A stretch of 63,412 bases of DNA, counting the filler, from Neoconidiobolus thromboides FSU 785 (taxonomy: Eukaryota > Fungi > Entomophthoromycota), in NCBI GenBank assembly GCA_025603075.1. It is 6 parts of 6 records of this genome, joined end to end, with 100 filler letters (N's around TTAATTAATTAA, not from the genome) between each part and the next. Parts side by side here need not be neighbours in the genome. Positions count along the whole stretch, not along the records: positions 1 to 29,460 come from MU626491.1; 5 more parts are not named here. One strand, given 5' to 3'. This document shows positions 1,873 to 29,460 of this stretch, in pieces. Each line of letters starts with the position of its first letter. Within the stretch, counting starts at the first letter, position 1. A model generated the notes under the pieces. It saw nothing but the letters and a program-made list of their open reading frames with translations, made no database searches and was not told the origin of the DNA. The position numbers were made by a program, and so were the translations under genes.

Positions 1873-4800
1873 ATGGAAAAAGAAAACATTGAAAAAGAGG
1901 CTTTATTGCCACAAAGTGTAGTTCCCGAACGCCAAGAATCCTTACAAGATGCACAAGATCAACCACAAGAATTATTATCTCAAATTGATCAAAACTTACC
2001 CCAAACTGCTGAGCCCATCTCGGATATAGCTCAAGTAGAACAAGGTGTTTTAAAAGAAGGTAAATTTACAATTAAAAATTCAATTTTAAGGAAGATTATT
2101 TACAATTAAAAGATTCGATAAGTGAAATAATCGAAGCTGGTCCAAGCGAACTTGTTAATATCATACGTGGTGGTAATGAGCCCACAAAACATATTTTATT
2201 AAAAGATCAACCATATGCATTAAATGCTTTGCCTGGTGAATATAATTCTGAACAAGTAAGTAATATGAAAAAGAATGTACCTTGTTCACCTGATGAAATA
2301 CCTAAGATAGTTATTGGTTGGGAAGAGAGTTTAAATAAAGATTTAGCACACGTTGAACAGGTTCAGGAAGGAGTATCTGAACAAAAAGTAAGCCATTGGA
2401 AAAATGTAACAGTAATTTATGTAGCTATATTTTTAACATGGTTTGGTGTGGTACTTGGTGGTGGTATTACATGGTGTTTAATAGTGGTAGCATGTTGTTC
2501 AAGTTATTATCAAAATACCATTGAACGGTATAGAAAAAGTGCCCGGGATGATGCTATTCGAGAATTGTGGTTACAAAAATTAGACAATGAAACAGAATCG
2601 GTTGCTTGGTTGAATTCGTTTTTAGATCGATTTTGGGTTATCTATGAGCCCGGTTTATCAGCTACTATTAAAAGTATTGTGGATGCAGCATTGGAAATCA
2701 ATAAACCAACCTTTTTGGAAAATTTAAGTTTAACTGAGTTTAGATTAGGAAATAAAGCACCAAGGATTAATTCAGTAAAAACGCATACTAAAACTAAAAA
2801 CAATTCTGTTTTGATGGACTGGGATATTGAATTTCAACCCAATAAAGATTTATCAATGACATTAGAGCAAATTAAAAATCAAATCAATCCCAAAGTAGTA
2901 TTACAAATACGAGTTGGTAAAGGAATGGTAGGTGCAGGTTTACCAGTACTTGTAGAAGATTTTGCTATTCGAGGAGTATTAAGAGTACGAATTAATTTTG
3001 GTGATGTATTTCCACATGTAGATGTAGTTACATTACAATTTTTAGAAAGACCAGATATTGATTATGTGCTTAAACCAGTAGGTGGTGAAACATTTGGATT
3101 TGATATTGGAAATATACCTGGATTAAGCTCATTTATTAGAGATCAAATTCATGGTACTCTAGAAGGTATGATGTATGCACCTAATATCTTTAGTTTATCA
3201 ATTGCTCAAATGATGGCACCAATTGCTAAAGATAAATATAAAGGGATACTAAAAGTTAATGTAAGATATGCTAAAGATTTACAATATCAAGATGGATCTG
3301 GAGATCCATATGTATTAATATCTACATCTAATAAAAGACCAAGTTATCGTACTAAAACTAAAAATCAAACATATAATCCAGAATATAATGAAGTATTCGA
3401 AATGATATTATTAAAAGAAGAAGATAGTATTAAATTTACAATCTTTGATTTTAATTCCTTTCGTAAAGACTTTGAATGTGGTAGTGAATATCTATCAACA
3501 GAAAGTTTTAATGAAAAACCAATTCAAAATAATCTCCAATTACCACTTAAAAGAGGTTCCCTTTATGTAGGTAGTTTAACTATTGATTGTCAATTTTACC
3601 CAACTGATTTTGAATATTTACCAAAAGTTAATAATGATAAAACAGTAACAACATCAACAGAATCTCAATTACCTAAATCAGGTGTGTTACATTTTACATT
3701 ACATCAAATTAAAGAATTAGATGCTTCTAAATCTTTAATTAATAAATTCACACCTTATTGTTTAATATCAATTAATAACATTGAAAAATTACAAACAGCA
3801 AAAAAGAAAAGAAATAATAATCCCATTTATGAAGAATCTATTGAGCATTATATTAAAGATATTAATAATTGTAAACTCAATTTAATTATTAAAGATGACC
3901 GTGGTATGTCAGTTGATCCAATTATAGCTAAATGGTCTCAAGATGCTACTAAATTGATTGAACAAAATGGATGGTATCCCTTAAATAACGTAGCTTCAGG
4001 AAAAGTTAAAGTTACTACAAAATTTTATCCATTAAAAGGACAAACAAATGAATTTAATAACGATAATTTATTAAATTATTTTGGTTTATTAAAATTATTT
4101 ATAATTGAAGCACCAAAATTAAGATTAAATTCAAATAAATCGGAAGTGTATATTAAAGTCAAATATTTAAATAAAGTTATGGGAAATACTAAAATATTAA
4201 GATCAGATTTAATTCCTCGTTGGAATCATCAATTAGAATTCCCTATTCATTTGGAATCTGATCATATTGAATTAGAACTTATTGAAATAATTAATAATGA
4301 AGCTATTATTTTGGGTAGGGTAGAACATTTAATATCGAGTTTAATTTTTCAAAAGGAAAATGGATTTGAATCTAAAGGTTTAATTAATAAGTAAGTTTAT
4401 TATTTATATTAAATGAAATTTATATTAATATATTAATATATTTTATTTTTATTTTATTTCTTAGTTGGACAAGTATTAAATCCAAATCCAATCGAATTGT
4501 TGGTGCATTACATTTTGGTTCTTGTTTATTTATTAAAGATCAAGAATTAGTTTCTCAAGTGGATAATAAATTGATTAATGAAACCAATAATTTAGAATCA
4601 ATTAATGAAAATAAAAAAGACGATAATAATAATAATAACAATAATAATAATAATAAATCAACTAATCTTCCAGCAATTGAATTATATCCAAATATAAACA
4701 ATGGTATATTAGGAATTAATTTTATGAAATTAGAAGGAATTAAATTGAATAACATTTCAATGGGGCTTTATTTAGATGGACCAAATAGTAAAGTTATTAA

Positions 4801-6686: not shown

Positions 6687-8408
6687 TTATTCCACTTTTT
6701 TATTATTATTTAATGGAGAAATCAATATTGATAATTTATAAAACCAATTTAATAATAAAAATTTCAGTCTAAGTAAATAATAGGAATATAATAAATTAAA
6801 ATACTTTGGAGTAATATTAAATAAGTTATCAACCTTCCAATTGAATTCCTTCATTAAATAAAGATGTGAGAAATCACCCAAAATTTTAAATTGAAGATAA
6901 GGATCCTGTTTTAACTCCATTGAAATTAACTTTAATAAATCTTGAATTTTAAATAAATAAACTAAATCATTAGGAATATCTGCTAATAGTTTAGCAATAT
7001 TAGGTAAATGCTGAATTACTTTTTGTTCAAAATTAAAGTCTTTAGAATTTCCTTGGCGTGCTGTTAAAATGGCTTTAATTAATCTATATGTAGTTGAGTT
7101 ACCACCTAATTTAATAGAATATTCTTTGATTTGATCCTCATTTTGTTGTAATATGTTAATCCATAGATGTGCATATAAATTGATAAAGTTACTATTGAGT
7201 TCATGATATAATCCATGATCTAGTAATACAATTTTGAAATTCTTTTTGCTATCTTTTTCATCTTTAATAATCATTAAATTCCCAGGATCTATTTGAAGTT
7301 AATTAGTATTATTTATTTTTTATTTATTATTTATTAAACTTACGTGCATCACAATGTATAAATCTAATATTTAATAAAAATAAATTAATTAGTTAATAAA
7401 TTATATAAGTAAATACAGTAAAATAAAATTTACCTATGTCTATAAAGCATTTCAGAAAATATTTGATTAATTTCAATACTTACTTTTCTTGGATTAATTT
7501 GATTTTCTTTAAAGTATTCTACATCATTTAATTTTTTACCGTCGATAACTAAAGAATTAATTAATTTAATTTTAAAATATAAAATATACTTACATTCCAT
7601 ACAAAGAATTCTTTTTGTTGCCCAATAAACTTTTGGAATTAGAAGTTTATAATTTAATAAATCAAAATTTTGCTTTGCTCTAATACCATTTTCACCTTCA
7701 ATTTCAAAATCTAGTTCTTTAGGTAAATTTCGTTTAATTTCATTAATCAACCAACTAAATTGAAATTGAGGTAATACAAATTGTGCCAAATTAACCATTT
7801 TGTCTAATATTAAAAGATCTAATTTAGAAAATAAACCTACTTTAGGATGTTGCAATTTCACTGCAATTTCCTTTCCTTGATAAATTCCTTTATGAACTTG
7901 AGCAATAGAAGCTACTCCAATTGGCTCAGGTTCAATAAACTCAAAGATTTCATTTAATGATTTTCCAGTATCTAAAAGGACCATTTTATCTAGTACTTCC
8001 AACTTCGTAGCAGGGCAAGCATCATGTAAAGGTCGAAATGTAACACACCATTCCATTGGTAAAAAATAATTTAATGCTGTTAAATGTTGACCTAATTTGA
8101 TATAAAAACCACCATTATACAACATGGCTTTTAATACTCGATTTGCATTACGTTGATGTATTTCTTTTTTTTGTTGTTCAATATACTTTGAATTAGAATT
8201 GTTATCTGATTCAAATGGCCAATTTAATCGATAATCAATGATCACTTCCAATCCCGTTCCTACGGCCATTAAGCCTCGACTTATTCCTTCTATATAGAAT
8301 TGAACATCATCTAAATGAAATGTATAGATTTCTAAACTTATTAAACTGCCTAAGATCAATCCAATATTTCGTTTGTTTGATTGTAACCAATGGGGTTTAT
8401 TATTATTA

Positions 8409-8464
<56 letters not shown>

Positions 8465-8581
8465 GATAGATAATGTTGTTAATGGTCTGTTAATAGGTCG
8501 AAACTTAGGTTGTAATTTAATTGGAGATAAAATAGATCGAGCTAAGATACATCGTTGTTTTAATAGCCCTGTTAATAGCAT
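6687..8581 (-). CDS. ABC1/UbiB/ADCK1-type atypical kinase, probably mitochondrial; multi-exon
   Basis: ABC1 motifs GFYIKLGQHL, ASIAQVH, VAVK-like IAVKLQHP, ELDFEIEGEN. The catalytic loop HCDAHPGNL is rebuilt across a short intron (~7288-7343), followed by LLDHGLY. The basic N-terminus with no acidic residues resembles a presequence. Confidence 0.88.
8399..8464 (-). repeat. (AAT)n microsatellite encoding ~22 Asn in the ABC1 kinase N-terminus
   Basis: In-frame ATT triplets on the + strand with one GTT interruption. Confidence 0.9.
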
Positions 8582-16514: not shown

Positions 16515-18386
16515 ATGATCAATAAGTATATGTCAACAAGAGAGTTCCAGTTTCGGGCTTCTAGGGCCCCAAAAAGCATCTATATGCGATGTGACAATGA
16601 CGAACTAACTTCAATAGAAAAATTTCGGGAATCAATGGATGAGATGTTAGATGCGCCTGACGATGAATTTCTAACAAAGAATGAATGTAGTGACGAAGGA
16701 TTAATGAAAATCTTCAAATTTGAAAGCTCTGGTCCTGGATTAATCGCATCAAATGACACCAATGATCACGATTCTGAGCCTGAATCGTTCAATTCAGCAG
16801 AAATAAAAAAGCATGAAGAAGCCACTATGCAAAATCTAGCTAGGAGAAGGCGATATTTTACTTCATTTAAATATAAAGAGCATCTTGAGCCTGTTTTTTC
16901 ACAGGGTAGTAACATGTTTGATCCTGATGATAACTCTATGTTTTCCCACTTTAATTTAGGTAGAATGGATGATTATGCGCTATTTGGCGTTACAGAAAAA
17001 GATAAAGAAGAATTCGATTTTAACAAAAATAAGAATAAGCCAGTTTCCATTCTAAGTGAAAAGAATGATTCAATTCTTTCCAATGATAAAAACAAGACAA
17101 CTAATGTTTCTGATGACAAACCAGTACGTGGAAATGACTTTAAAATGCCAGATGATATTCAGGCATACTTCATTAGATATACTAAAGCTCTGGCTGAATG
17201 TGAAGCTAAAGGTATGCCACCAGAAGAAATTGCAATTGTTGTACCAAAAATGTTAGATGAAGAGGATAGACTTAAGGCAATGAAAGAGATACCTGTTACC
17301 AATCGAAACAATGTTGATGGTGAAAAGAGATCTAACCATATGAAGGCTAAATCAATGTCAATTGTAACAAATTTAAATCAAATGACTAATAATGTGGTTT
17401 CTCCAATCCCAATAACATCACTAGCTACAACATCTAATTCTGCTAAGCTTTCGACTCCAACAAAATCACCTACATCAGCTAAATCGCCCAGTAAGCCTTC
17501 TTTGAAATCATCATCAACAGTCAAAGCCATTAAATCAGTAAACATCAATAAAATTGATGACAATAGAAGACACTCAATGATGAATGTGCCTACCGAAGCT
17601 AAAATACCAAATAAAAAAGATGAACGAAGAAAGACTACTATTTTAAGCGGTGGGTCATCAACTTCATCTATTAGACAAAGAGTTCAACCAACTTCAACCA
17701 ATGATAATCGACGTAATGGAGTTATTTATTCAAATATACAACCAGTTGTTTTAAAACAAAGTAACTCAACACCAATTATGAATAAATTGAGGCCAGTTTC
17801 AATGCAGATTAGTAAATCTGATTACAAATCAGCTTATAATTACAACAGTGGATCAGTTGAAAGAGTATCAAGACTTATTGAAAGTTCCGAAGAGAGAAGA
17901 AAGTCATTCAACCAAGCTATTATGCCTAGTTCCCCCAATTCACATTCTAAATCTAAATCCATTTCACTTGCGTCTCCTAACTCCCCTAATTTACATTCCA
18001 AATCTAAATCTATTTCCTTTACGCCACCAGATTATTCTAAATCAAATTACAAAATAGTACCAGCATCAAATGACATAGTCAATGCGCTACCAATTAATTC
18101 AAGTAGTATACAAAGTAGTTTTAAGCCAACTTTAAGTGCTAAATCAATATTAAGTAGTAATTATACTAAAGACGACTTGTTAGAATTAATTAGAGAAAAT
18201 AGAGCACCCAAACCTAATTTTCTACTCAATAGAGCTTTGTTACTTGGTGAAGATAAGGCAAGAAGGGATCCTTTTATCCAAGCGTGTCTTAGAGAAATTA
18301 GACTAAATAGGGAATATATATTTAAAAACAATCCTTCTTTTACTTCTAAAATCCCAAAGCCTGAGCTACCTTATCCGAATGTTTAA
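16515..18386 (+). CDS. Intronless 623-aa orphan; acidic N-terminal half, Ser/Lys/Pro-rich disordered middle, short helical-looking C-terminus
   Basis: Long uninterrupted ORF in a very AT-rich genome with a coding-like GC rise; no family recognised. Confidence 0.75.
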   Translation: MINKYMSTREFQFRASRAPKSIYMRCDNDELTSIEKFRESMDEMLDAPDDEFLTKNECSDEGLMKIFKFESSGPGLIASNDTNDHDSEPESFNSAEIKKHEEATMQNLARRRRYFTSFKYKEHLEPVFSQGSNMFDPDDNSMFSHFNLGRMDDYALFGVTEKDKEEFDFNKNKNKPVSILSEKNDSILSNDKNKTTNVSDDKPVRGNDFKMPDDIQAYFIRYTKALAECEAKGMPPEEIAIVVPKMLDEEDRLKAMKEIPVTNRNNVDGEKRSNHMKAKSMSIVTNLNQMTNNVVSPIPITSLATTSNSAKLSTPTKSPTSAKSPSKPSLKSSSTVKAIKSVNINKIDDNRRHSMMNVPTEAKIPNKKDERRKTTILSGGSSTSSIRQRVQPTSTNDNRRNGVIYSNIQPVVLKQSNSTPIMNKLRPVSMQISKSDYKSAYNYNSGSVERVSRLIESSEERRKSFNQAIMPSSPNSHSKSKSISLASPNSPNLHSKSKSISFTPPDYSKSNYKIVPASNDIVNALPINSSSIQSSFKPTLSAKSILSSNYTKDDLLELIRENRAPKPNFLLNRALLLGEDKARRDPFIQACLREIRLNREYIFKNNPSFTSKIPKPELPYPNV

Positions 18387-18912
18387 CTTCAAGTTTTTAT
18401 ATTAAACTATAATTAATTTATTACAAAATATTTATCTTTATGTACATGATTCTTATCATTCAAGTTTATGCTAGGATTAGCTATTAAGTAGAAAAGGTGC
18501 TGGTTGAAATAAATTATATTTAATAAAATTGTTTTTTAATTCTGCCAAAGATACTAATTGGAATACAGAATTTAATTTTTATATTTTTATATTTTTATAT
18601 TTTTAAAATAATAGTCAAGGAGGTCATTTATACCATTCCTTTAAAGCTTTTGTTTACTATTGTAACTAATATTTAAATATGGAAATAATTCTTCCTGATT
18701 TGATCCTTTGTTATTAAAGAAATGTCCTAATATCCATTTATAATCCTTTCTGAAAATTTGCATTATTATTTAAGGTAAACACGCATTCATATTGTTACAA
18801 AAAAGCTTTAAGATAACCTTTGAATTTATTACAATATAAATTTATACAATTCCATTTAAATAGGTACTAAATCAAAGCTAATCATGCGATCAAAGATTAT
18901 TTGTTTTGGTAA

Positions 18913-21207
18913 TTAACTATCAGTGATGATCTTAAGTGGATGTGCTCCAGGGGACAGAATAAATGCATTTAGATCTAGATGAAAGTCTAAAGAAGGGTCA
19001 TTAATAGATGAAGCTGAGTTGCTTCGATTTGGAACTTGCTCAAGGGGCGAGAACAACAAATATAAATATTTTAAAGTTTTTGACAAAAAGCTGGAAGGCA
19101 TTTCTCCCAGCAACACTTTGTTTGAATTTTGGTACTTACGTTCCGTTAACACATTATCATAAGTGGAATACCCATACTTAACTTTACAATGCTTTTCTAT
19201 TGCCTATATAAATTAATTAAAATTAGTCATTAAAAGGCTGAGTAAAATTACTATAAATATGTCCCATCCCATCTGTTGGTATTTTCTGTTTTTAGTTCTT
19301 CTATATAAATAAAAGAGGGATTCTACTGTTTCACTGGATAATAAAAAATTGGCGTCATAAATTGAAAAATAATTTTCTTCAAAGAAAGTGGAGTTAGTAA
19401 ATGAAGATATTTTCGAGTAATAGTCATTAGGATTAACACCCAAGAAGTATATGTGCTCTGGAGCTAATTGAGTTGGGGCGGATTTGTATAAGTTTAAACA
19501 AGTTGAGGTAATATTTTCAGCAAGTTCAATATCCTTAACTCTGTTTAATACATGTGAACTTAATGCAATTAATCCTGGAAAAAAACAAGAGTAGTGACTC
19601 ATTGCATATTCCAATTGATTATCAGTATTCAAGCCACCCAAAAATGTTTTACCCATATCTGGATGACCAATCACCAATTTACGTTGTATTGCATTAAGAG
19701 ACTTTAAATATTTCTCTTTTAATCTTTGGTCTTTTTTGTTTAATAACAAATATTCTTTAAATAATACATCATAATATCTTCCACCATCTTTATCTAAACT
19801 TGATTTTCCACTTGGTTTAATAACTTCAATATCAAACTGAGTTGGAAAAATGCCTGGTATATCTAATATAGTTAAATCAAATAAGTTTCTTACTAAATTA
19901 GCTTTTTCTATGTATGTTTGATTATCTGTTAGTTTTCCAAGTTTAATAAATTCCAATTGAAAGGAACTTAATTTAGAAATCGTTGTCCACTTTTCGTTAG
20001 TGTTGTCACCATTAAACTTAAAAGTTGATGTAGGTAAACCATGGGAAGTTTCAAACGCTATCATACTTAATTGCGCCACTTCTTCAGCTTTAGCTAACAA
20101 ATCGTCATCATTTGTAAGCTCATATGCCCCCAATAAACCACCCAAACATGAACTAATAAATTTATCGAATTCTATGGTCCCACTCTGAATAATAAATATT
20201 TATTTATCAAAAAATAATTAAAATAGTTTACTAGTTTACTAAAATCTACTGACAAAGCCTGTTTCTTCGCGTTTTCAAACTCTTCTTTTAACCCCATTAT
20301 TATAAGCGTATCTAAGTTATCAAATAATGTCATCCCAAAACTAAGTTTATTTTAAAAATTATTCTTTTCTTGTAATAATTAATTTACCCTTGATAACTAT
20401 GAAATAAATAAATAAATAAATAAATAAAATCTAGAAAACAAGTTACTCATCAGTGTATGTTTTCCTCAAAGGTAATATTTGGTCATGACCAAACGCTAAC
20501 TCTTTATAGCTATTCCAACTATGTAAAAATGATTTCCTAATCTGCAATCTTCTTAACCTATCTAGAGCTTCCCATCGAGCGCCTTGAACCTTATCACTAG
20601 AGCCTTTCAAAAGCTTTGGAACCCATGAAAAAGAACTACTTCTTTCTACATTTTTAGCGTCTCTCATCTGATGTAACAAATTCAGTTTGTGCTGTTCCGA
20701 AGGAGGCAGATCACTAAAATCAATCGCATAATGGCTTAACATTTCATTTAACATCTCGCTTATCCTTTCATCTTGTCTATTGTATTCTTGATCCGCTAAA
20801 CTGGTTAAGTTTCTATTAAACTCAAATTCGGAGTCTTCATAGCTTGCTAAAGTATTTACATAATCGATATAGTGGCTCCAGCCCAAGATAGAGAAAAAGA
20901 TAATGGAAGTTGAGACGATTACAAATATAATAGCTGGCTTTACATAAGGTCTTTTTTCATTCTTTTCATCAATCCAATATTTGATTTCAAAACATATATC
21001 TATTAACTTATTGAATATGTAATATTTGGATAAAAAGTCTAAAACACGTTCAAACGGATGATATATTATTTTGTTCATAAACTTCGACCACCTGCTTTGT
21101 GCCCCTCTTTCTTGTGTTGTATCGTTGAGTTGAATCTCTTCCTCATAGTCTATCCCTCTTACACTTTCATACTCACTTTCACTACTATTCACTCGATTAT
21201 AATACAT
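18913..21207 (-). CDS. GH47 (class I alpha-1,2-mannosidase) fold, type II membrane protein; probably catalytically inactive; 4 exons
   Basis: Scaffold motifs FLHSWNSYKELAFGHD, LDTLIIMGL, LGGLLGAYEL, FQLEF, APEH, ETVESLFYLYRRT, TLKYLYLLFS and AHPL, plus one N-terminal TM segment. Active-site motifs are degenerate (see findings). Confidence 0.88.
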
Positions 21208-21403
21208 GATTTCTAGTTATTTAAGAAAGTAAAAAATAAAATCTTAGATTTTGCATTTAAATTTAGTTTCTCCGCTATAGGAACTTGGATAGAAAGGAGT
21301 GAATTTATAAAAAATTGATCAAGAACCATATTTGGAAGTAACTTTTTCCTTTCAACATTTTGCTCATTTTTGGGCCTAAGATTTAGAAACAAATTATAAT
21401 ATA

Positions 21404-21500
21404 TGGGAATATAGTTTTTTAAGAATTTTACTAACAAATTTTCCACTCAAATAGTGCTTAAAAAATGGAAAAAATAATGAAGCCAAAAAAAACATCCCCA
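21404..21500 (+). mobile_element. MITE copy (A), ~200 bp upstream of the GH47 ATG
   Basis: TA|TGGGAATATAG...AAGAATTTTACTAACAAATTTTCCACTCAAATAGTGC...CATCCCCA|TA. Confidence 0.88.
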
Positions 21501-22200: not shown

Positions 22201-24450
22201 TTAAGATTGTATCCTCGAGTTTATACTAATGCGCATGCGTTCTACAGCATCGCTAACAGTTAAATGTACATATCTTGATGCATTACTTACAATTGGTTCA
22301 ATCTCATTACTTAAACCATTTACTTTGAGATCGCCTTCTTCAATTAGTTGAACATTAGCTTCGGTAGTTTGGTTATGGAAGCTTCGTGGCAAAATTGGAG
22401 CAACTGGACTTGTAACTCCAGAAAGCTCCAAAACTTTCAATACTTGAGGATTAGTTGAAACAAAATGCATCTCGAAGAATTTGGTATCCTCGTTAAAGTT
22501 TAAAGAAGAAGAAGCAGAATTTTCTCCAGCAGCGCCTCCGATTTCAAATTCCTGATCTATATTCTCTTTGGAATTTACTTCAATTATCGTTTTATTGTCA
22601 TCAACCCCAGCATATCTTGATAACATGTCTCTGATATCAAATAATCCTTGTAGTCCAGAAGAGTCGATTAAATTAACTGAACTAAAGTCAAAAATAACAG
22701 CTTTAAGGTATGTGAGGGACTTAGGATCTGGAGCAGCAATACCAGTTTGTTTTTCTCTTGCTGCTCTAAGCTTATTTCCTCTTACTTCTAAATCATCACA
22801 CCATAATTTATCTTCCGGATTTACAACTACAGATCCAGATCTAGTTACTTCCAAAACAACATCTAAAAGGCTATCTCTGATGTAGTCAATATTTGGAAAT
22901 ATTAATGATTCTTGAGGCTTAAAGATGAGCACTCCTGGAAGAGGAGAGGATGTTTTATACCCTGGATGCTTTTGGTCAATAAATACTCCAGATCTTCCAA
23001 CGACTTGAGCCAATAAATATAGATGTGGGCGTGCAATTTGATATACTAAAATAAGGAAAGCTAAACCTACTGAAGAGGCAATGCCAATTTCTGCCCCTGC
23101 AAAAAACGTGGCTAAAGTTGCTAATAAAAATACTAGACAATCACTTGGTTGAACTTTCCAAAGATCTAAAACAACTTTATAGGAAGAAACAAGGGAAGAA
23201 GCGGAAACTATAATGATAGCGGAAAGGGTAGCACTAGGTATATAGTAGAAAGCAGGGGTAAGGAAACCTAGAGCCATTAATACGACTGTACCTGTCCAAA
23301 TCCCAGCAAAAGGAGTACGTACTCCAGACTGAGATTTTACTGCAGATCTTGAAAAGGAACCAGTTGCTGGAAAAGCACCAAAGAAAGAAGCAAAAAAATT
23401 ACAAATACCCAAAGCAAAGAGTTCTTGAGAAGAAGAAACTTGGTAGCTAGATTGACGAGCAAAAGCTTTACATAAAGCAACATGTTCTAAAACACCAATA
23501 AGAGTAACTGGAATCAACTCCAATGCTACATCCGATAATAACTGTGGGTTAAGGTTAGGCACCCCAATGTAGTTAAATCCTTTTGGTACTTCTTTTACAA
23601 TTTTCAATGTAAATTTTGGGTTGGAATTAAATACTAAGAATGAAATGATAGTGAAGATTAACACAGCAAGGCCATTAGAAGCAATTTTTAAAAATCTAAT
23701 TGATGGATATTTTTTTGAAAATCTTTTAGAAATGAAGTCCAGGATAAGGATGAAAGCTAATGAACTAAGTCCGAACACAAGGTCTCTCCAATTAAGATTT
23801 GGTATGTTTGTAAAAAAATTATAAATAATTGTGATAGTAGGATCGTTAGATGATACATTAGGGATACCTAATAAAGGAGCAGCCTGAGTAAGGATAATCG
23901 TGAATGCAGAGCCCGTAGTAAATCCAATGATAACAGGATTGGGAATTAAATCAAGTAAAATACCAAGCCTAAATATACCCATGATAAAAGTTATCATAGA
24001 TCCTAAAAAGGCCAGAGCAACGGCAATATCTACCGCAGAAAATTGAGACCCATGATTTAACACTCTTGTAACTACAGAGCCCACGAGTAAAGATAATACA
24101 GCAGTAGGGCCAACCGAAATTTCTCTTGAAGTTCCCATAAGAGAATAAAGCATGACGCCCATAAAACCGGTATATAACCCATAGACTACAGGTAAATTAG
24201 CTAGTTTTGCATATGCTAAAGATTGAGGCACAACCATAACGCCAACAGTTACACCAGCGATAAAGTCGCCTAAGAGCCATTTTCTATTATACTTGGTTGC
24301 CCATGAAAATATTGGAAAAAAAGATTTAAAGTAGGCTGGAGAGGCTTCTTTTACACGGTGAAGAGTACGGGATGTTTTTTCTTTAAAATTTAGTTCACCA
24401 AAGTAATTTCGTGCTTCAATATCATCTTTTAATTTTAACTGCTCGTTCAT
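22201..24450 (-). CDS. SulP/SLC26 sulfate (anion) permease with STAS domain, intronless, 749 aa
   Basis: GDFIAGVTVGVMVVPQSLAYA, GLYT, VGPTAVLSL, NQE-like SQELFALG, ATGSFSRSAV; STAS motifs FPNIDYIRD and DFSSVNLIDSSGLQGL. Confidence 0.95.
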   Translation of the reverse strand: MNEQLKLKDDIEARNYFGELNFKEKTSRTLHRVKEASPAYFKSFFPIFSWATKYNRKWLLGDFIAGVTVGVMVVPQSLAYAKLANLPVVYGLYTGFMGVMLYSLMGTSREISVGPTAVLSLLVGSVVTRVLNHGSQFSAVDIAVALAFLGSMITFIMGIFRLGILLDLIPNPVIIGFTTGSAFTIILTQAAPLLGIPNVSSNDPTITIIYNFFTNIPNLNWRDLVFGLSSLAFILILDFISKRFSKKYPSIRFLKIASNGLAVLIFTIISFLVFNSNPKFTLKIVKEVPKGFNYIGVPNLNPQLLSDVALELIPVTLIGVLEHVALCKAFARQSSYQVSSSQELFALGICNFFASFFGAFPATGSFSRSAVKSQSGVRTPFAGIWTGTVVLMALGFLTPAFYYIPSATLSAIIIVSASSLVSSYKVVLDLWKVQPSDCLVFLLATLATFFAGAEIGIASSVGLAFLILVYQIARPHLYLLAQVVGRSGVFIDQKHPGYKTSSPLPGVLIFKPQESLIFPNIDYIRDSLLDVVLEVTRSGSVVVNPEDKLWCDDLEVRGNKLRAAREKQTGIAAPDPKSLTYLKAVIFDFSSVNLIDSSGLQGLFDIRDMLSRYAGVDDNKTIIEVNSKENIDQEFEIGGAAGENSASSSLNFNEDTKFFEMHFVSTNPQVLKVLELSGVTSPVAPILPRSFHNQTTEANVQLIEEGDLKVNGLSNEIEPIVSNASRYVHLTVSDAVERMRISINSRIQS

Positions 24451-25421: not shown

Positions 25422-25722
25422 TTAGTGGTTAGGGCACTTATTGAATATTGTATTAGTTAAACTATATAACATTCATCAGAGCATGCTTAGTATACTATAT
25501 TATTTATTAAATTACTATCATTTAATATTAAGGTTCACTTAATAGTTTAGACAATAAGTTATAGGGTGACCTAGAGACTTATCTTAACAGAGATATCTAA
25601 AACTGTTTAAAGCAATTATTATATATAAAGTATAATGAAATGACTTTTAGCACTTTGATTTTTTTATGTATTTTTGAGAACCGCAAATGCAAATACTAAT
25701 AGTAGAAATCATACATAATATA

Positions 25723-25822
25723 TGGGGATGTATTTTTGTGTTTAAGAATTTCACTAATAATTTTTCCGCTTAAATAGCGCTTAAAAATGGAAAAAATAAC
25801 GAAGTCAAAAAAAACACTCCCA
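25723..25822 (+). mobile_element. MITE copy (A)
   Basis: TA|TGGGGATGTATTTTTGTGTTTAAG...AAATAGCGCTTAAAAATGG...CACTCCCA|TA. Confidence 0.9.
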
Positions 25823-25900
25823 TATCATTAATAAAGAATTATTATTAATCAATTTTTTAGCATAATTAAACTCCATTTCTTTCTTTCTAAATAAAATAAT

Positions 25901-26627: not shown

Positions 26628-26688
26628 AAAGTAATACAATTTAACGATAGCCTAGAAAGTTTAAAATCACTAATATAACTTGGTAATA

Positions 26689-26788
26689 TGGGGATGTATT
26701 TTTGTGTTTAAGAATTTACTAACAATGTTTCCACCCAAATAGCGCTTAAAAAGTGGAAAAAATAATGAAGTCAAAAAAAACACTCCCA
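26689..26788 (+). mobile_element. MITE copy (A)
   Basis: TA|TGGGGATGTATTTTTGTG...ATAGCGCTTAAAAAGTGG...CACTCCCA|TA. Confidence 0.9.
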
Positions 26789-26979
26789 TATAGTTAATTT
26801 TTAGTTAATATTTTTTTTAACTATTTCTTTTTATAGATATAGTTTTGAAAAAGCTTATTAAGCTTTCAAATACCTTGTAGTTTATAAGTTTATTTATAAT
26901 ATTTTTTATTAATGTTGTATTATATTAATACTGAATTTTACTGATAATATTTAGTATAATATTTATTTTGTATATTATA

Positions 26980-27966: not shown

Positions 27967-29460
27967 ATGTTGACAACTTTAAAATTTACCGATGACATAC
28001 AAGAAAGAAAATACCATGGTGATTTAACAGCCAAAGAAAACGTTTATTTAATTATAAAACAAGCGAAGCGTGAAATACCAGACTATTTTAAATCTTTCTT
28101 CCCTATATTTAGTTGGCTTCCAAATTACAATCGTAAATGGATATTACAAGATATGATAGCTGGAATCACTGTAGGAATCATGCTTGTTCCTCAATCTTTA
28201 GCTTATGCAAAACTAGCTAATTTACCATTAGCTTATGGCTTATACACCTCTTTCATATGTCCAATTTTATATCCGCTGATGGGCACCTCTAGGGAAGTCT
28301 CTGTTGGCTCTACAGCCATGTTGTCTCTAATAATAGGCTCTACTATTACTAGAGTAACAAAAATTAATCCTGATTTTTCACCAGTAGATATTGCAGTTGC
28401 TTTGACTTTCTTAAGCTCTATTATTACGGCTATTTTGGGAATATTTAAGTTAGGAATCATTTTAGATTTAATACCAAAACCAGTAATTATGGGCTTTACT
28501 TCGGGTGCTGCTTTAACAATTATTTTAACTCAAGTGCCTACCCTCCTTGGAATTCCAAATGTATCTTCAAGTGATTCAACTACAACTGTTATTTATAACT
28601 TATTTTCGAATATTCCTAAACTTGACTGGGTAGATTTAGTGTTTGGTTTGTGTTCTTTATCATTTATATTTACTTTGAATTTTGTATCTAAAACTCTAAG
28701 TCCAAAGTACCCAGTTATGAGATTCTTAAAAGGGCTTTCAATTGGTTTAACTGTGTTGATATTTACAATCATTTCGTTTGTGGTGTTTAAAACTCGACCC
28801 GATTTTGATTTGAAAATCGTTAAAACGGTACCCCAAGGCTTTGGTTATATAGGAACGCCCAACCTTGACCCCAAGCTGTTAGCTGAAGTTTCTCTTGATT
28901 TATTGCCTGTGATTTTAATTGGGGTTTTAGAACATGTAGCTTTATGTAAAGCTTTTGCAAGACAAGCTAGTTATCAAATCTCATCTTCTCAGGAGTTATT
29001 TGCCTTAGGAGTCAGCAATTTATGCGCTTCATTCTTTTCAGCCTATCCTGCCACCGGCTCTTTTACAGGATCTGCCATAGTCGCACAATCAGGAGTTCAT
29101 ACCCCATTGGCTAGCTCTTTTACAGGAATAGTTGTATTAATGGCAATAAGCTTCCTTACACCAGCCTTTTTTTATATCCCAAATGCTACTTTGGCTGCAA
29201 TTATTGTTGTTTCGGCTTCTTCATTAATATCTTCCTATAAGACTGTTTTTCATTTATGGAAAATTCAGCCTATGGATTGTTTAGTTTTTCTATTAGCAGC
29301 ATTCGCTACATTCTTTGCAGGAACTGAGATCGGTATTGGATCTTCCTTAGGCTTAGCTTTTTTAGTATTAATCTATCGCATTGCACGTCCACACCTTTAT
29401 TTATTATCTCAAGTTATTAATCGAACCAATGTATTTATTGACCATAAACATCCAGCTTAT
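27967..29460 (+). CDS. SulP/SLC26 permease paralog, 3' end lost in an assembly gap
   Basis: Colinear with the 22201-24450 protein (FKSFFPIFSW, VPQSLAYAKLANLP, LEHVALCKAFARQASYQ, IARPHLYLL); runs into the Ns at 29461 before the STAS domain. Confidence 0.92.

Follow-up and report, generated by a model that had tools for sequence, protein, structure and literature searches.

On the minus strand at 18913–21207 of a 63,412-nt stretch of DNA (the window, along which all positions are counted unless another locus is named), Neoconidiobolus thromboides FSU 785 (Entomophthoromycotina) carries a gene of glycoside hydrolase family 47 (GH47) whose active site has been dismantled. The gene sits on a 29,460-nt contig of ~27% GC. 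Its five exons, one of them a 9-nt micro-exon, encode a 700-aa type II membrane protein. The gene is spliced, expressed and under purifying selection, and its product very probably has no catalytic activity. We think it likely that this membrane-anchored pseudo-mannosidase is kept by selection as a non-enzymatic adaptor or regulator, descended from a class I endoplasmic reticulum (ER) alpha-1,2-mannosidase of the Mns1/MAN1B1 type.

Active-site residues

Canonical GH47 hydrolysis requires Ca2+, held by T688 and the surrounding acids, plus three carboxylates with a proposed catalytic role. Sixteen active-site positions were read from an alignment of two gene models with the 257 nearest GH47 proteins (259 sequences). 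The numbering is that of human ER mannosidase I (ERManI), anchored by HMMER alignment to human ERManI chains, in which R334 and D463 fall at indices 90 and 219 of the 5kij chain. Thirteen of the 16 positions are replaced, in the following motifs.

20479–20490, minus strand: GHDQ, in which the Glu of GHDE has become Gln
20149–20169, minus strand: FDKFISS, with E330D and R334S
19972–19986, minus strand: TTISK, with E397K
19765–19794, minus strand: DKDGGRYYDV, with R461D, D463G and E467D
19591–19602, minus strand: MSHY, with D523S; H524 is kept
19318–19341, minus strand: LSSETVES, with R597S; E599 and E602 are kept
19066–19101, minus strand: MPSSFLSKTLKY, with F659S and E663K
18937–18954, minus strand: SPGAHP, with T688P and E689G

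The substitutions had been listed in an earlier note made by eye from the DNA, and both the ERManI and the 259-sequence alignments bear them out, with motif coordinates agreeing within a few bases. Some details change. The block at 19066–19101 is altered as described, but E663 is the Glu of GETLKY, which has become Lys, and not that of MESFF (E657, here Pro). FESTIR has indeed become FDKFISS; what stands at 330 depends on a one-residue insertion beside it, giving Asp if the insertion is placed after that position and Lys if the alignment is ungapped. The Gln of GHDQ is present but is not diagnostic, since canonical paralogues from the same fungus carry Asn there. The note took E599 and E602 to be the only survivors. 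Both are kept, and so are H524, the third retained active-site position, and a conserved cysteine pair (equivalents of C527 and C556; C310 and C339 of the deposited protein, P0001), which is invariant in alignment A1.

Among the 257 relatives, the active-site positions are ~95–100% invariant where the residue is present, with R461, D523, H524, E397 and the Glu of GHDE more variable. Glu occupies E330 in 249 of 252, Asp occupies D463 in 253 of 257, and Glu occupies E599 in 251 of 253; the invariance of R597, E602, E663, T688 and E689 is similar. E330, D463 and E599 are the proposed catalytic residues, and C527–C556 is the conserved disulfide (PMC5035969). Here the first of the three is Asp or Lys, the second is Gly, and E599 is kept. 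The Ca2+ ligand T688 is Pro, with the nearby E663 and E689 changed to Lys and Gly, and the substrate-binding R334, R597 and F659 are all Ser. Between them, D463G, R597S, E663K, T688P and E689G cost the protein its Ca2+ ligand and one of the three residues proposed to be catalytic. Since D463, T688, E663, E689, R334 and R597 are all replaced, Ca2+-dependent alpha-1,2-mannosidase activity is very unlikely. In humans, R334C and E397K are loss-of-function disease mutations (PMC5035969), and both of those sites are replaced here (R334S and E397K).

Gene structure and transcripts

Four minus-strand open stretches within 18913–21207 are collinear matches to the Pfam GH47 profile PF01532. In the joined model, the exons run 21207–20447, 20396–20388, 20340–20232, 20184–19252 and 19203–18913, giving 700 codons in an open frame; the introns are 50, 47, 47 and 48 nt, all GT..AG. 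The earlier note had the transmembrane anchor, splice sites and reading frame intact, as they are, in a gene of four exons; the fifth is the micro-exon. Contigs assembled from four sequencing runs were placed on 18600–21500. Those of runs X6, X7 and X9, which belong to one study and are guessed to be RNA, cover exons only and lack all four introns. Their joints fall exactly at predicted introns (19204–19251, 20185–20231 and 20341–20446), and the spliced contigs have eight additional letters between 20341 and 20447, matching the micro-exon site. The features of the gene are as follows.

20447–21207, minus strand: exon 1, with ATG at 21207, an open reading frame, RNA-like contigs over 20447–21195 and a match to Pfam profile positions 2–27; it encodes a ~90-aa cytosolic tail, the transmembrane anchor, a lumenal stem and the start of the GH47 domain
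21001–21075, minus strand: conserved cytosolic motif, residues 45–69, from pairwise and six-sequence alignments
20878–20934, minus strand: single transmembrane segment, residues 92–110 (Kyte–Doolittle maximum 2.37 at residue 92)
20388–20396, minus strand: 9-nt micro-exon TTATCAAGG, flanked by AG and GT and completing residues D-Y-Q-G
20232–20340, minus strand: exon 2, the DNLDTLIIMG region (Pfam profile 33–67), with RNA-like contig joints at 20341 and 20232
19252–20184, minus strand: exon 3, the barrel core (Pfam profile 83–387; 208 bits, E 2.5e-61, cut-off 22.9), with a PDB alignment to ERManI
19378–19440, minus strand: 21-aa loop with an N-x-T sequon directly before the former catalytic-base motif, from an RNA-like contig and alignment to the L001 gene described below
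18913–19203, minus strand: exon 4 (Pfam profile 389–455), with the stop codon at 18913–18915 and the RNA-like joint 19203/19252

The transmembrane segment is the sole hydrophobic stretch of the protein and is preceded by basic residues, a combination that predicts a type II topology with ~90 residues in the cytosol and the GH47 domain in the lumen. The C-terminus is 10 residues past the barrel. The deposited protein, KAI9291922.1 (P0001; "seven-hairpin glycosidase", 496 aa), begins from a Met inside the frame, which leaves it without cytosolic tail or anchor; the micro-exon is missing from it as well, and the 21 residues of 19378–19440 are treated as intron. An RNA-like contig (X9 record 23) covers 19246–19491 without break, so the loop is retained in the transcript. 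The public gene model is thereby corrected at three points, namely the N-terminal anchor, the micro-exon and a false intron over the loop. For the searches and folding reported below, the input was either single exons or P0001 (without micro-exon and loop), not the joined 700-aa model.

Over 18834–21195, runs X6, X7 and X9 each contain two versions of the transcript, one near-identical to the window and the other 4–9% different, mostly by transitions. The sample may therefore be a mixture of two strains or species, or come from one isolate of high heterozygosity.

Fold and subfamily

AlphaFold, run on P0001 with a 64-row alignment, returns a confident GH47 barrel (predicted local distance difference test, pLDDT, 91.8; predicted template modelling score, pTM, 0.91), as the earlier note had proposed checking. 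In Foldseek, the top matches to this model are human ERManI structures (5kij, template modelling score 0.90, root-mean-square deviation 2.5 Å), followed by Golgi ManIA and then by fungal and bacterial GH47s. The Htm1 and CtEDEM structures of the EDEM group rank clearly lower, below all class I enzymes (8zpw, TMq 0.75, E 2.5e-20; 8pko). The top PDB sequence match, with exon 3 as query, is again ERManI (E 5e-31), and the match of exon 4 to EDEM1 is not significant (E 0.52). By homology and by its predicted (alpha/alpha)7 barrel fold, the protein belongs to GH47.

Within the family it has the marks of class I ERManI/Mns1 proteins: the type II anchor, the conserved cysteine pair, and ERManI as the closest relative by both sequence and fold. 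As for EDEM/Htm1/Mnl1, the catalytic triad of that group is not kept, EDEMs are not the nearest relatives, and the protein ends shortly after the barrel. The suggestion that this is not an ordinary EDEM thus holds up. Since its defining catalytic features have failed, the protein should not be annotated as an alpha-1,2-mannosidase.

A remodelled ortholog

A whole-library HMMER search with exon 3 found one similarly degenerate close relative, P0003, encoded on L001, a 5.8-kb contig assembled from a public run of an AT-rich relative. The L001 gene encodes 709 aa with 41% identity overall. All four intron positions and phases are identical, and the identical micro-exon TTATCAAGG is found at L001 2555–2563. 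Its N-terminal region is conserved with that of exon 1, including the transmembrane segment and the cytosolic motif; the motif is common to the two orthologs and unaligned to the other GH47 proteins compared. In the 21-aa loop, [YF]YS and TN-x-TFF stretches are conserved. A word-based protein search with P0001, limited to proteins of 273–868 aa, found no ortholog above 36% identity.

The active sites of the two orthologs have come apart in different ways. Loss of D463, E467D, E663K and T688P are common to both. L001 keeps E330 and has D463I, E599N, E602K, H524I and E689N. The same residue is found at three of the 16 active-site positions, against 47% of positions over the domain (p ~0.02, resampling), so the old pocket seems released from constraint rather than re-specified; the former −1 sugar pocket appears to evolve faster than the rest of the protein. 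The two orthologs keep different catalytic remnants, as would be expected had catalysis already disappeared in their common ancestor, and the residues fit a loss before the two lineages split.

Selection rather than decay

The loss is focused. Of the other canonical GH47 columns that are at least 90% invariant, 53 of 62 (85%) are kept, compared with three of 16 at the active site (Fisher p 8e-7), and the canonical paralogue P0020, described below, keeps a comparable 56 of the same 62. At 41% protein identity, synonymous sites relative to L001 are saturated, and the ratio of nonsynonymous to synonymous change per site (pN/pS) was estimated from the 4–9% divergent transcript version. Among the best-supported 40 of 119 differences, seven are in the 3' untranslated region, one is synonymous in the stop codon, 22 are synonymous and 10 are nonsynonymous, so that with 410 synonymous and 1690 nonsynonymous sites pN/pS is ~0.11. 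The base composition predicts one stop per 12 codons, and 700 open codons would arise by chance with a probability of ~4e-27.

The focused active-site loss, the confident fold, the low pN/pS, the open frame and the intact ortholog all indicate selection rather than decay. This is a selected pseudoenzyme under purifying selection and not a pseudogene. The earlier note had argued against simple decay, and the spliced and expressed transcript, the pN/pS and the intact 709-aa ortholog with identical introns agree, as does the contrast between three of 16 and 53 of 62. It had also allowed that a dN/dS near 1 with no expression would speak for a young pseudogene; the pN/pS and the intron-free RNA-like contigs came out otherwise.

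Paralogues and origin

At least two further GH47 proteins of this genome are canonical, KAI9299139.1 (P0020) and KAI9299125.1 (P0029), both encoded on one 414-kb contig. All of their catalytic and Ca2+ residues are intact, Asn stands at the Glu of GHDE, and they are ~32–33% identical to the protein described here. The gene is therefore an extra paralogue and not the organism's only ER mannosidase. In P0020, three residues before the WG motif are missing relative to other GH47s (L003 1854–2012). Since this gap coincides with a 159-nt intron at the same position as the micro-exon of the present gene, the annotation of P0020 may lack a micro-exon too.

Divergent GH47s also occur in Basidiobolus (B. 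meristosporus P0162 and ORX95840.1, P0007; a B. ranarum fragment, P0017; loci L002 and L004). P0162, P0007 and P0017 have D463H, R597W, F659Q, E663K, T688S and E689G, and the Basidiobolus proteins keep E330, R334, E397, E599 and E602. With E330 and E599 kept, these partly remodelled paralogues may represent an intermediate stage or a parallel instance. In a 72-row tree, the N. thromboides gene and L001 group with support of 100 and are sister to P0162 and P0007 with a Shimodaira–Hasegawa-like approximate likelihood ratio (SH-aLRT) support of 97. Nine canonical-invariant columns are altered in all four of these proteins, all inside active-site motif blocks. In a 46-row tree, the Basidiobolus grouping is without support. 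Without 23 active-site columns, the pair is placed instead beside P0008 and P0020/P0029, with weak support (72/79). We do not claim a shared clade with the Basidiobolus proteins, as its support is lost in both of these analyses.

Under the approximately unbiased (AU) test, grouping with the canonical N. thromboides paralogues remains acceptable (p 0.24). Together with the 72/79 placement, this weakly suggests a recent duplication from them, and amino-acid composition driven by AT richness, a bias flagged in the tree analysis, may possibly pull N. thromboides proteins together. Three intron positions are shared with P0020 (column 280, phase 2; column 320, phase 0; column 657, phase 0) and one with Basidiobolus; these suggest a local paralogue and are not decisive because the positions may be ancestral. 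The gene either belongs to an old remodelled clade within Entomophthoromycotina, or represents one of two parallel remodellings, with E663K and E689G occurring in each.

Proposed function and alternatives

In the reading that we favor, the residues for Ca2+-dependent mannose hydrolysis would have been lost from a class I ER mannosidase, and the type II anchor would place the seven-hairpin barrel in the lumen beside the two canonical enzymes of the same genome. There, in the ER or early Golgi, the protein might serve as an adaptor, a retention factor or a regulator, directed at glycoprotein quality control or at the active mannosidases. Most of its function would be carried by the lineage-specific loop, the cytosolic tail and the barrel surface, the latter two conserved, rather than by the old −1 sugar pocket. 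What is conserved between the orthologs is the barrel framework, part of the loop before the former base motif, the stem, the transmembrane segment and the cytosolic motif, and it is the conservation of these instead of the pocket that leads us to favor such a role. By analogy, precedents point the same way: degradation of the NHK variant through ERManI is independent of catalytic activity and of the catalytic domain (PMC5035969), and yeast Mnl2, for which no in-vitro activity has ever been shown, raises microsomal trimming when deleted (PMC9547274).

Several points weigh against this role. The loss of activity is read from the residues, and with Asp at 330 and with E599 and E602 remaining, weak or altered hydrolysis is conceivable. 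The assignment of the runs to RNA is a guess backed only by their intron-free contigs, pN/pS comes from 32 coding differences among the best-supported 40 of 119, and the adaptor or regulator role draws on analogy and on conservation between only two orthologs. Finally, both orthologs have K663, P688 and D467, and some of the pocket could thus still be important.

The pocket could matter if the protein were a non-catalytic lectin, its remodelled site binding oligomannose or a new, possibly anionic ligand and delivering or retaining glycoproteins in the ER/Golgi. The fold and the cleft-forming framework are intact in the AlphaFold and Foldseek results, E663K, T688P and E467D occur in both orthologs (E663K in the Basidiobolus proteins as well), and Lys663 could conceivably occupy the place of Ca2+. 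The idea of EDEMs as lectins is moreover established in the field, though the direct evidence that any GH47 acts as a lectin is called extremely weak (PMC7835635). We nevertheless consider this possibility doubtful. Pocket conservation between the orthologs is below the domain average, and the net charge over the 16 positions, counted from the alignment, is −7 in canonical enzymes, ~−3 here and ~+1 in L001. Position 461, which we take to be a determinant of ER-type specificity, is Asp here. Of the earlier note's proposals, a GH47 barrel whose catalytic and Ca2+ sites are dismantled stands, and a neutral or basic pocket for a new, possibly anionic ligand is not supported; at ~−3 the pocket is predicted to be less acidic than in the canonical enzymes, not basic, and it shares only its three positions with the ortholog. 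An elaboration that we regard as unlikely is that in an entomophthoralean lineage (Neoconidiobolus, the species of L001 and possibly also Basidiobolus) an ER mannosidase became a receptor without metal or hydrolytic activity, with Lys663 replacing Ca2+ and the conserved cytosolic tail coupling glycoprotein recognition in the lumen to the sorting or degradation machinery. Should the Basidiobolus proteins prove not to be orthologs, E663K, E689G and the loss of D463 and R597 would have arisen twice, which would argue for directed re-wiring and not decay. Such a receptor, if real, would amount to a dedicated natural form of the contested MAN1B1 "gatekeeper" function and of the old EDEM-lectin idea.

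An active glycosidase with a shifted constellation (Asp330, E599, E602 and D467), perhaps Ca2+-independent or acting on another substrate, strikes us as improbable. In its favor, E599, E602 and H524 survive, an Asp could plausibly stand in the acid position, and purifying selection is compatible with an enzyme. Yet D463, R334, R597, E663, T688 and E689, each near-invariant in the relatives, are all replaced, and L001 has lost E599 and E602 while keeping E330, so no catalytic pair is common to both orthologs. Substitutions at R334 and E397 inactivate or destabilize human MAN1B1 (PMC5035969). Least probable by far is that the locus is a young pseudogene, or is mis-assembled or mis-annotated with an accidental open frame. 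The many radical substitutions at invariant sites and the imperfect deposited model would fit, but this explanation is already largely refuted by the improbability of the open frame at 27% GC, by four introns correctly spliced in RNA-like contigs, by the pN/pS, by the ortholog at 41% identity with the same micro-exon, and by the 85% of non-catalytic invariant residues kept together with the confident AlphaFold model.

Neighboring sequence

An ~80–100-nt element with inverted ends, ATATGGGGATGT...ACATCCCCATAT, lies at 21418–21498. Further copies lie near 725, 1555–1658, 6465, 25720–25825, 26686–26791 and 27067. The window contains 13 occurrences of its terminal motif where 0.3 would be expected, several of them in inverted pairs ~90 nt apart, and the element looks like a miniature inverted-repeat transposable element (MITE). 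Contig depth over 21418–21498 is very high in all four runs examined. Scans for tRNAs and Rfam families near the gene gave no match, and none for 21418–21498, which was considered as an RNA family and rejected in favor of a repeat. Other genes on the contig are as follows; the two sulfate permease genes are less than 6 kb apart.

2229–4391: C2/SMP lipid-transfer protein
6690–8581: ABC1 atypical kinase
16515–18383: Ser/Asn/Lys-rich 623-aa open reading frame without a Pfam match
22204–24450, minus strand: sulfate permease gene (Sulfate_transp and STAS; domain match)
27967–29457, plus strand: sulfate permease gene (Sulfate_transp and STAS; domain match)

Comparison with known systems

GH47 proteins set the mannose timer of glycoprotein quality control. 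To our knowledge, all well-studied members keep their catalytic residues, and enzymatic and non-enzymatic roles have been hard to separate for that reason. Non-catalytic action has been argued for two decades, with EDEMs as lectins, a gatekeeper role for MAN1B1, and yeast Mnl2.

The closest known system is class I ERManI (MAN1B1; 5kij, 1x9d and 1fmi; yeast Mns1, 1dl2), with which the protein shares its type II topology, (alpha/alpha)7 barrel, cysteine pair and most framework residues. It differs from those enzymes at 13 of the 16 active-site positions, including D463, R334, R597, E663 and T688, and adds a long conserved cytosolic tail, a one-residue insertion after the FE motif and its own 21-aa loop. 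P0020 and P0029, of the same genome and family, retain all key residues, and this protein does not. The divergent Basidiobolus GH47s have E663K and E689G in common with it, and D463, R597, F659 and T688 are lost in both; they retain E330, R334 and E397, none of which is retained here. This likeness reflects either common descent or convergence.

The EDEM/Htm1/Mnl1 proteins are homologues that were once proposed to be non-catalytic lectins of ER-associated degradation; that view is reported as the former consensus, its direct support being very weak, and Htm1 and the EDEMs are described as demannosylating N-glycans (PMC7835635). They keep E330, D463 and E599 (PMC5035969), and they are lumenal, without the N-terminal anchor seen here. 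Saccharomyces cerevisiae Mnl2 (YLR057W), likened here by functional description only, is GH47-like, with no mannosidase activity seen in vitro, and microsomal trimming increases on its deletion, a hint that it acts as a regulator and not as an enzyme (PMC9547274). Outside the family, the GH18 chitinase-like lectins lost catalytic residues and were retained as binding proteins (PMC3662789). They offer an analogy only, as their fold and substrate are unrelated, and binding, demonstrated for those lectins, is a candidate function here. In the GH47 literature examined, whose coverage was partial so that novelty is not proven, we found no member with a dismantled active site. The practical impact is limited, the host being a little-studied fungus and the function a proposal. 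What the gene adds is a glycosidase-derived pseudoenzyme within GH47: a natural member with its catalytic and Ca2+ sites dismantled beside two normal paralogues, which makes it a clean reagent and an evolutionary test case.

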